From NCBI GenBank assembly GCA_021613535.1, contig CP075494.1, positions 6,200,001 through 6,264,000 of the forward strand: 64,000 nucleotides of DNA. The letters run 5' to 3'. The translations under genes were made by a program, and so were the position numbers. Of the stretch, positions 58,995 through 60,254 are shown piece after piece; the stretch's first letter is position 1; each line of letters opens with the position of its first letter. The notes beneath the pieces are model-generated. The model did no database searches and was not told where the DNA came from. It was given only the letters and a program-made list of their open reading frames with translations. This stretch comes from Adineta vaga (Eukaryota; Animalia; Rotifera).

Positions 58995-60254
58995 ATGGGT
59001 CAAGGTGAAGTATCCGATGCTTTCTTACAACAAGTTTTCCGAAAGTAAGATTACCTTTTTTTTCGTAAGATAATTTCGAATTCAATTGATCGTTTAGAGT
59101 TGATGCAGATGCATCAGGTTCAATATCTTCGAATGAACTTCAATCGGCTCTTTCAAATGGTACATGGAGTCCATTCAATCCTGTATGATTTTCTTTTCAT
59201 GATAATTCAATTTTGACAAATTCTTTGTTTTGTTTTTTTTTGTGTAGGAAACTGTTCGAATGATGATTGGTAAGTTTTACAATTGAATAAAAGAAGAATT
59301 TGTTCTATTTGGGTTGAGAGAAATATGGTAGAGTAATAACATGTTTTCAGGAATGTTTGATCAAGATGGATCAGCTACAATAGATTATAAAGAATTTAAG
59401 GCTTTATGGAATTTTATAACTGAATGGGAAAAAGTTTTTCGTGGTTTTGATGAAGATAAAAGTGGTTCGATTGATAAAACTGAATTTCGTAAAGCATTAA
59501 CATCGTTCGGTAATGATTAAATCGAACGAAAAGAATAATTTTGTCTTTGCATATTTCGATCGACAATCTCAAACTTTCATTTTCCTTTTCGGAGAGTAAT
59601 GAGTCGTCCTATATTTGATTCTATAGGTATGTTTGATCAAGATGGATCATCAACAATTGATTTTCAAGAATTTCGTGCACTTTGGGGATATGTTACTGAA
59701 TGGGAAAAATGTTTCAGGTTTGTTAAATTTTTCTTTGAGAAGAAAATTTTGAAAATTTATTTGAATTTTTTCAGAAAATTCGATTTGGATGGTAGTGGCA
59801 GCATTGATAAACACGAGCTTAAAATAGCCTTAAGCTCGTTTGGTATGTCCTTTTTTTTGTGTAGCATATTTATTTTTCGTCTATAATAATCAGTGATTAA
59901 CATCCATATGTATTAGAAATGTAATTTTCTGCTCATGCTTTGATTGTCGATCGATATTATATAATGCAAAGCATTTTATTCTTTTCGTTTTCTTTTTGTT
60001 GTTTAATAATGAATAAGCGTATGTTTTGTTTGGATATTCTAGGTTATCGTCTTTCGGATCGTTTCTATGATTTATTAATTCGAAAATTTGATCGAACAGG
60101 TCGTGGCACAGTTGCATTTGATGATTTTATTCAAGCTTGTGTATCAATTCAAACATTAACGAATGCTTTTCGTCAACATGATCGTTTACAAAATGGACAA
60201 ATTACAATAAATTATGAAGATTTCTTATCGCTTGTCTTCTCACTTAAAATGTAA
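58995..60254 (+). CDS. PDCD6: Penta-EF-hand protein ALG-2/PDCD6 with duplicated alternative EF2-EF3 module
   Basis: [86 protein letters not shown]. Exons 58995-59044, 59098-59182, 59248-59269, [59351-59509] or [59627-59717 + 59775-59842], 60043-60254. Confidence 0.95.

Follow-up and report, generated by a model that had tools for sequence, protein, structure and literature searches.

Mutually exclusive one-exon and two-exon EF2-EF3 modules in the ALG-2/PDCD6 gene of bdelloid rotifers, with a candidate intronic RNA stem around the exon pair

The ALG-2/PDCD6 gene of the bdelloid rotifer Adineta vaga carries two alternative versions of the segment encoding EF-hands 2 and 3, one of them a single exon (module A) and the other a pair of exons separated by an intron of its own (module B), and transcripts contain one or the other. 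A long-range RNA stem, predicted between the two introns that flank the exon pair, may guide this choice. The account as a whole, comprising duplicated modules, exclusive use and a stem-guided choice, is considered rather likely, its parts being of unequal strength, as set out below.

The window analysed here is a stretch of 64,000 nucleotides of A. vaga (contig CP075494.1, positions 6,200,001 to 6,264,000), and all coordinates refer to its + strand. The gene (58995-60255, 1.3 kb) comprises seven coding exons, every border being GT-AG. Exon 1 (58995-59044) starts with the ATG at 58995, is identical to the public A. vaga protein P0177, and is joined to exon 2 in all four RNA runs considered (59044|59098, GT..AG). 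Exon 2 (59098-59182), supported by RNA contigs and Pfam, encodes EF1, and is followed by a 22-nt exon 3 (59248-59269) that ends in phase 1 and whose donor is spliced either to A or to the first exon of B. Intron 3 (59270-59350) is 81 nt long with a stop in frame. Module A is a single 159-nt exon (59351-59509), and module B consists of exons B1 (59627-59717, 91 nt) and B2 (59775-59842, 68 nt). The last exon (60043-60255, RNA contigs and Pfam) encodes EF4-EF5 and ends with the stop TAA at 60253-60255. The exon coordinates and translations given in the initial annotation of this DNA were exact when the sequence was read again.

Homology searches were run with the exons of the window taken singly and with public proteins. 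EF-hand Pfam models match exon 2, both modules (A, B1 and B2) and the last exon. Over its entire length, module A aligns with residues 71-122 of the solved human and mouse ALG-2 structures (E 4e-18, against E 1e-10 for sorcin), and ALG-2 chains are the best solved relatives, far ahead of sorcin and calpain. Full-length relatives from molluscs, cnidarians and insects (52-59% identity) are named programmed cell death protein 6. These similarities identify the gene as the bdelloid orthologue of ALG-2/PDCD6, a penta-EF-hand Ca2+ sensor. P0177 corresponds to exons 1-3, A and the last exon.

The 5' UTR (58937-58994) lies immediately downstream of an AG acceptor at 58935-58936, where RNA contigs of two runs place ten foreign letters, ACTTACCAAG, before 58935. 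A search of the genome for the motif ACTTACCAAGAGGT, in which the leader letters are followed by a GT donor, gave 53 occurrences, against 0-2 for the control; most are arranged as head-to-head pairs with a spacing of about 167 nt (e.g. L016-L018), an arrangement that SL RNA genes would be expected to show. The pattern resembles spliced-leader trans-splicing from SL RNA genes present in multiple copies; the leader letters were not found in any open paper.

Modules A and B are of equal coding length (159 nt, and 91 + 68 = 159 nt), both enter and leave in phase 1, and both are bordered by AG and GT and devoid of stops, as the initial annotation had described. Their only departure from standard tandem-duplicated alternatives is the 57-nt intron that interrupts B. 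They share 35 of 51 comparable residues and 69% of their bases. Heavy synonymous difference had also been claimed, and is borne out by a pS of 0.58 and a dS of about 1.1, with differing codons at 10 of 35 conserved residues. At each of the nine Adineta and Rotaria loci with the stem described below, the donor of A lacks a G at +5 and reads GTAAT; in Didymodactylos it reads GTATGT.

Exclusive use of the two modules is seen in RNA. Contigs from four runs of four studies, one run bearing a second organism label, were placed on 58900-60400; their "RNA" labels are guesses, but GT..AG joints and a foreign 5' leader in the contigs show them to be cDNA. The joints 59509|60043 (A to last exon), 59717|59775 (B1 to B2) and 59842|60043 (B2 to last exon) are present in all four, and the loose ends before 59351 and before 59627 both spell the end of exon 2 followed by exon 3, again in each run. 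In run X5, contigs for A and for B both have a length of 217 letters (28 from exons 2-3, 159 from the module and 30 from the last exon); they form simple bubble paths, as two alternative paths give, and the A contig goes from exon 3 directly into the last exon without a branch. Neither a joint between A and B1 (59509->59627) nor a contig skipping both modules was found among the contigs of the four runs. Transcript-derived open reading frames of environmental origin have the same structure, with 175-residue proteins containing either A only (P0172, P0179, P0186, P0208, P0210) or B only (P0170, P0171). The modules are thus used mutually exclusively, a conclusion held with high confidence at contig level and compatible with a minor form containing both modules or neither. 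The proposal of alternative EF2-EF3 modules, one exon against two, had been made in the initial annotation from the letters alone, and the joints now place both alternatives between exon 3 and the last exon.

Contig depth is similar for the two alternatives in the three A. vaga runs (22, 54 and 79 for A; 16, 43 and 64 for B), although this measure is rough and the ratios unreliable, as assembled contigs drop rare variants. Intron 3 is the only intron represented by retained-intron contigs (59250-59379, runs X1 and X17), at a depth of 5.3 in X1 and 28 in X17 compared with 22 and 79 for A; such retention agrees with a choice that is slow and regulated at the exon 3-A step.

How could one module be chosen at the expense of the other? 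Nonsense-mediated decay cannot enforce the choice, because 159 is a multiple of three and transcripts with both modules or with neither stay in frame. A search for U12-type introns was negative, all introns being GT-AG without the U12 donor consensus, and exclusivity based on decay or on U12 splicing is rejected on these grounds.

A candidate element emerged from inverted repeats detected in the window. Its 5' arm, in the intron between A and B1 (59524-59568), contains box 1 ACGAAAAGAAT, a middle helix strand TTTGCAT and box 2 TCGATCGACAATC; its 3' arm, in the intron between B2 and the last exon (59942-59990), contains box 2' GATTGTCGATCGA, ATGCAAA and box 1' ATTCTTTTCGT. The predicted stem is made of three helices, with about 45 nt per arm, and its arms, 370 nt apart, enclose B1-B2. 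Both the minimum free energy and the centroid folds of 59505-60050 hold it (z -4.1 against dinucleotide shuffles). The boxes recur in both of these introns at 9/9 Adineta and Rotaria loci, where arm constructs fold at -32 to -54 kcal/mol and duplexes of the whole introns reach z -3.8 to -9 against mononucleotide shuffles, with 0/100 shuffles as good. When RNAalifold was applied to the complete 721-column alignment, which extends from the end of A to the last exon, it recovered the stem unaided. Compensatory double changes affect 4 of 27 stem pairs, with U-A replacing C-G in A. steineri and R. sordida, for example, and the middle helix pairs in both Adineta and Rotaria even though its sequence is not the same in the two genera. 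Of the cells in the stem, 92.5% are paired; slid registers give 35-56%, and none of 1565 random blocks exceeds 76%. Conservation is 0.90 in stem columns compared with 0.58 in other intron columns. Boxes 1 and 2 are absent from Didymodactylos, in which a 16-bp complement between A-rich and T-rich stretches occurs elsewhere in the same two introns (z -3.6, 1/100 shuffles as good). Taken together, these folding and covariation results argue that the stem is probably a real, selected RNA structure.

A pairing upstream that would compete with this stem was also searched for. Duplexes between intron 3 and the A-B1 intron have z values of 0 to -1.6 against mononucleotide shuffles, no better than shuffles in 8/9 of the loci with the stem and in Didymodactylos, and RNAalifold, applied between exon 3 and B1, detects around A no stem with covariation; the helices it yields are weak and do not covary (exon 3 pairs with the end of A, box 2 with the start of B1). 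With no covarying stem around A and duplex scores that are not significant except in one locus, a switch between two competing pairings is unsupported. The exception is a metagenome contig (L006), which alone holds a perfect 10-nt complement of box 2 in intron 3 (about 3010-3025; duplex z -5.5); this upstream complement would give the full two-way pairing architecture known from Drosophila srp.

Two further pairings were noticed in this region. In the predicted fold, the donor region of A (CGGUAAU, 59508-59515) pairs with the start of the last exon (GUUAUCG, 60043-60050); Rotaria could form a similar pairing of 7 bp, which is not available to L006. Within B2, a 10-bp exonic hairpin (59813-59839) ends 3 nt before the B2 donor and has a dG of -12 to -14 in nine loci, in all of which it is conserved, with two synonymous Leu codon positions that covary (CG in four, UG in three, UA in two). 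A weaker, AU-rich version with two compensatory changes occurs in an A. vaga paralogue of the gene, which suggests that the hairpin predates the gene duplication, and it is broken in Didymodactylos. This hairpin may explain the lower synonymous divergence of B compared with A.

The position of the stem suggests how it might act. From the base of the stem it is 15 nt to the A donor and about 50 nt to the acceptor of the last exon. On forming, the stem would loop out B1-B2 and bring the weak A donor beside the last-exon acceptor, turning a gap of 533 nt into an effectively short intron; A would then be spliced to the last exon and B excluded, and the B cassette, ancestral in character, would be the default when the stem is not formed. 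The stem is proposed to promote A, with B as default, because its geometry resembles that of srp and because the A donor is weak. That it favours splicing of A to the last exon is judged somewhat better than an even bet.

Alternatively, the boxes could be real and have their main role elsewhere, in back-splicing of B1-B2 into a circular RNA, as a double-stranded RNA target, or as palindromic protein-binding sites. The arms do flank B1-B2 in the manner of circRNA-promoting inverted repeats, the core of box 2 (TCGATCGA) is self-complementary, and a majority fraction of 0.90 makes the arms far more conserved than a helix alone needs. However, no backward joint (59842->59627) is listed among the contigs of the four runs, and protein sites or a role outside the choice fit less well with compensatory changes at four pairs and with a middle helix that has diverged between Adineta and Rotaria yet pairs in each. 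The geometry is moreover like that of the downstream srp pairing that selects an upstream exon. The A. vaga paralogue, located on another chromosome (contig C2), is also informative: its one module is of the B type and is interrupted where B is, it has no A, and its flanking introns of only about 55-60 nt leave no room for the arms. Such a role apart from the choice is unlikely.

Slightly less probable still is steric hindrance of the type seen in alpha-tropomyosin and in exons 4a/4b of OGDH, in which the branch point of the B1 acceptor would lie near the A donor, the stem being an accessory. In other Ca2+-related genes, exons are kept mutually exclusive by distant branch points (PMC7969005), and a pyrimidine-rich stretch covers much of the 3' half of the A-B1 intron. 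This intron, however, measures 115-163 nt, two to three times the shortest introns of the gene (51-62 nt), which leaves room for ordinary branch points; because it is not short, simple steric hindrance is improbable, and the choice of A by looping out of B1-B2 remains the preferred reading.

Could both modules instead be kept in one mRNA? A seven-EF-hand protein of 228 residues, put forward as an alternative in the initial annotation, would stay in frame, and NCBI predictions of 228-250 residues exist for R. magnacalcarata, R. socialis, R. sp. Silwood1, R. sordida, A. ricciae, A. steineri and D. carnosus. All double-module proteins of this size among the matches are nevertheless genome-annotation predictions (P0001, P0160-P0164 and P0166, the Didymodactylos prediction also mis-calling the start of A), and the same genomes hold predictions of the same gene with B only (P0165, P0168, P0169). 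No two-module frame was found among the transcript-derived JGI and Logan open reading frames, where such frames would score highest; together with the missing A-B1 joint in the four runs and the A contig of X5 that runs straight into the last exon, this leads us to reject the seven-EF-hand protein, now very improbable, and the claim is left without support. The public EF-hand proteins of 228-250 residues from seven bdelloid genomes are probably annotation artefacts in which the alternatives have been fused. The annotation of A. vaga contains isoform A only (P0177) and lacks isoform B, and some Rotaria annotations contain B only.

The arrangement is old within the bdelloids. The layout of A followed by B was also found in nine loci of seven named species, namely R. 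magnacalcarata, R. socialis, R. sp. Silwood1, R. sordida, A. ricciae (two loci), A. steineri and Didymodactylos carnosus (two loci), and in one metagenome contig, these loci together being L005-L014, so that the duplication, for which a search in other rotifer genomes had been suggested, spans Adineta, Rotaria and Didymodactylos, that is, three bdelloid families. In every bdelloid locus examined, A is unsplit, and B is split after base 2 of the Arg codon that follows a Phe. The layout is not due to chance, because the same order recurs across bdelloid loci. Didymodactylos carnosus has an additional intron, absent from Adineta and Rotaria, within the last exon (L010/L011, about 4140-4200).

Between orthologues, with the split codon of B excluded from the counts, omega is 0.11-0.17 for A (dS 0.9-1.4) and 0.06-0.11 for B (dS 0.44-0.50). 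These ratios, well below 1 and obtained between orthologues in addition to the comparison of A with B, indicate that purifying selection acts on both modules, as the initial annotation had supposed. That one of the modules might be a decaying or unused duplicate, which could be thought from the faster evolution of A (75% identity between Adineta and Rotaria, against 90% for B) and from annotations holding A only in A. vaga or B only in some Rotaria, is rejected as having a negligible chance, since the contigs of four studies show splicing of both at similar depth, and since both are intact in ten loci and under selection.

The history of the modules can be approached by comparison with the paralogue and with outgroups. 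In a tree of the modules (52 residues), the A modules, including those of Didymodactylos, form a clade with support 100/98, and B and the paralogue form another (93/88), apart from non-bdelloid modules. Derived residues common to B and the paralogue are Leu and Gly in the EF3 loop, a His preceding Glu, and a terminal Ser-Ser-Phe; several of these sites show the outgroup state in A. The monogonont Brachionus plicatilis has one unsplit EF2-EF3 module. That the exon duplication predates the gene duplication that produced the paralogue is supported but not proven by this tree of 52 columns only. The most economical history, likewise supported but not proven, would start with a tandem duplication of the EF2-EF3 exon in the bdelloid stem lineage, continue with the gain of an intron in B and a gene or genome duplication, and end with the loss of A in one copy. 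B would have kept the ancestral sequence character before gaining its intron, and A, the derived and faster-evolving copy, would have diverged while staying a single exon.

Two proteins of 175 residues result, each from an mRNA with one module. They differ at about 16 of 52 residues, located in helices alpha3-alpha5 and, within the EF3 loop, at positions that are not ligands. Neither module has lost a canonical Ca2+ ligand position of EF2 or EF3; the EF3 loop follows D-x-D-x-S-x-x-x-D-x-x-E in A and B of all species compared, matching human D103, D105, S107, D111 and E114. Consistent differences between the modules lie at EF3 loop positions 2, 4 and 11 (E/K/N in A vs L/G/H in B) and at the equivalents of human K90, I92, V98, T101 and L115-Q117. 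The equivalents of F85, W89, W95, F99 and F122 are kept in both. Among the human pocket residues, only those equivalent to I92 (I in A vs V in B) and V98 (V/I/A in A vs C in B) differ consistently; in human ALG-2, I92 is a pocket 3 residue and V98 contacts F122 beside pocket 2 (PMC4346919, PMC2927601). The initial annotation had pointed to a tyrosine (human Y91) replaced by Phe in A. This holds for the A modules of Adineta, R. sp. Silwood1 and R. sordida and fails for those of R. magnacalcarata, R. socialis and Didymodactylos; because three species keep Tyr in A, this residue does not define the difference between the modules. The initial annotation had proposed isoforms that differ in Ca2+ affinity or partner choice; a difference in partner preference is plausible.

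What could such a choice serve? ALG-2 connects Ca2+ signals with ESCRT-mediated membrane repair and with ER-exit sites, and bdelloids survive repeated desiccation and membrane damage. Two whole versions of its partner-binding core have been retained in all three bdelloid families sampled. A wider reading can be attempted, in which the stem would choose between a one-exon and a two-exon ALG-2 core by looping out a whole two-exon cassette, as the first RNA-pairing-guided choice documented in Rotifera to our knowledge, the isoforms would serve distinct partners in ESCRT- or COPII-linked membrane repair or trafficking, and PDCD6 would be a hot spot of EF-hand exon duplication in Spiralia. This combination is tentative, its chances falling slightly short of even. 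A small gene with a compact candidate element would be a handy test of arthropod-type RNA-pairing exon choice in another phylum.

Other spiralian PDCD6 genes show duplications of their own. In Gigantopelta (P0182/P0178) and Littorina (P0191/P0188), annotated isoform pairs of the same length differ only in the EF1 exon, and in Lingula (P0275/P0276), annotated isoforms of the same length differ in the EF1 exon and in the EF5 region. Brachionus plicatilis has two tandem copies of the EF4 exon (L015, 1973-2131 and about 2150-2286), one canonical and the other, the copy found in the annotated protein, with a degenerate loop and a Ser/Ala-rich insertion; these copies are a candidate for a separate alternative-exon pair. 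Because different exons are duplicated, these events, known from annotations alone, are regarded as independent, and duplication of one or another EF-hand exon seems to have happened repeatedly in spiralian PDCD6.

Alternative splicing of the same region is known in mammals, where the deltaGF122 isoform of ALG-2 loses ALIX binding (PMC2927601). This case concerns the same family, and the exon border after F122 is where the A and B modules end. In deltaGF122, however, an alternative donor removes two residues, whereas bdelloids swap a whole EF2-EF3 segment of 53 residues and keep F122 in both versions.

The exchange of Ca2+-sensing segments by mutually exclusive exons has precedents. The EF-hand exons of alpha-actinin are mutually exclusive and give a Ca2+-sensitive non-muscle form or an insensitive smooth-muscle form. 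Similarly, the mutually exclusive exons 4a/4b of OGDH exchange a Ca2+-sensing segment (PMC7969005). In both, one alternative loses Ca2+ binding or sensitivity, whereas A and B of bdelloids both keep the ligand positions of EF2 and EF3.

The closest parallel for the stem is found in Drosophila, where the mutually exclusive exons of serpent (srp, exons 4.1/4.2), 14-3-3zeta and Dscam1 (exons 4 and 9) are chosen via long-range intronic RNA pairing; in srp, a downstream intronic pairing is required for the upstream exon 4.1, which has the weaker splice sites (PMC4691838). As in srp, the bdelloid gene has two tandem homologous alternatives, the introns that follow the upstream and the downstream alternative pair and enclose the latter, the upstream alternative (here A) has the weaker donor, and compensatory changes are seen between species. 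Unlike srp, no conserved competing upstream pairing was found, the stem is here a predicted one, the animals are Rotifera, and the alternative that would be looped out is an exon pair with its own intron. No report of mutually exclusive exons, whether in PDCD6 or in rotifers, came up in a literature search. Tandem exons of this kind are an established phenomenon, as is their control through pairing between intronic RNA elements, and the bdelloid PDCD6 gene is a well-supported new example, whose less usual traits are that one of its alternatives is an exon pair and that the candidate control stem would loop out the whole pair.
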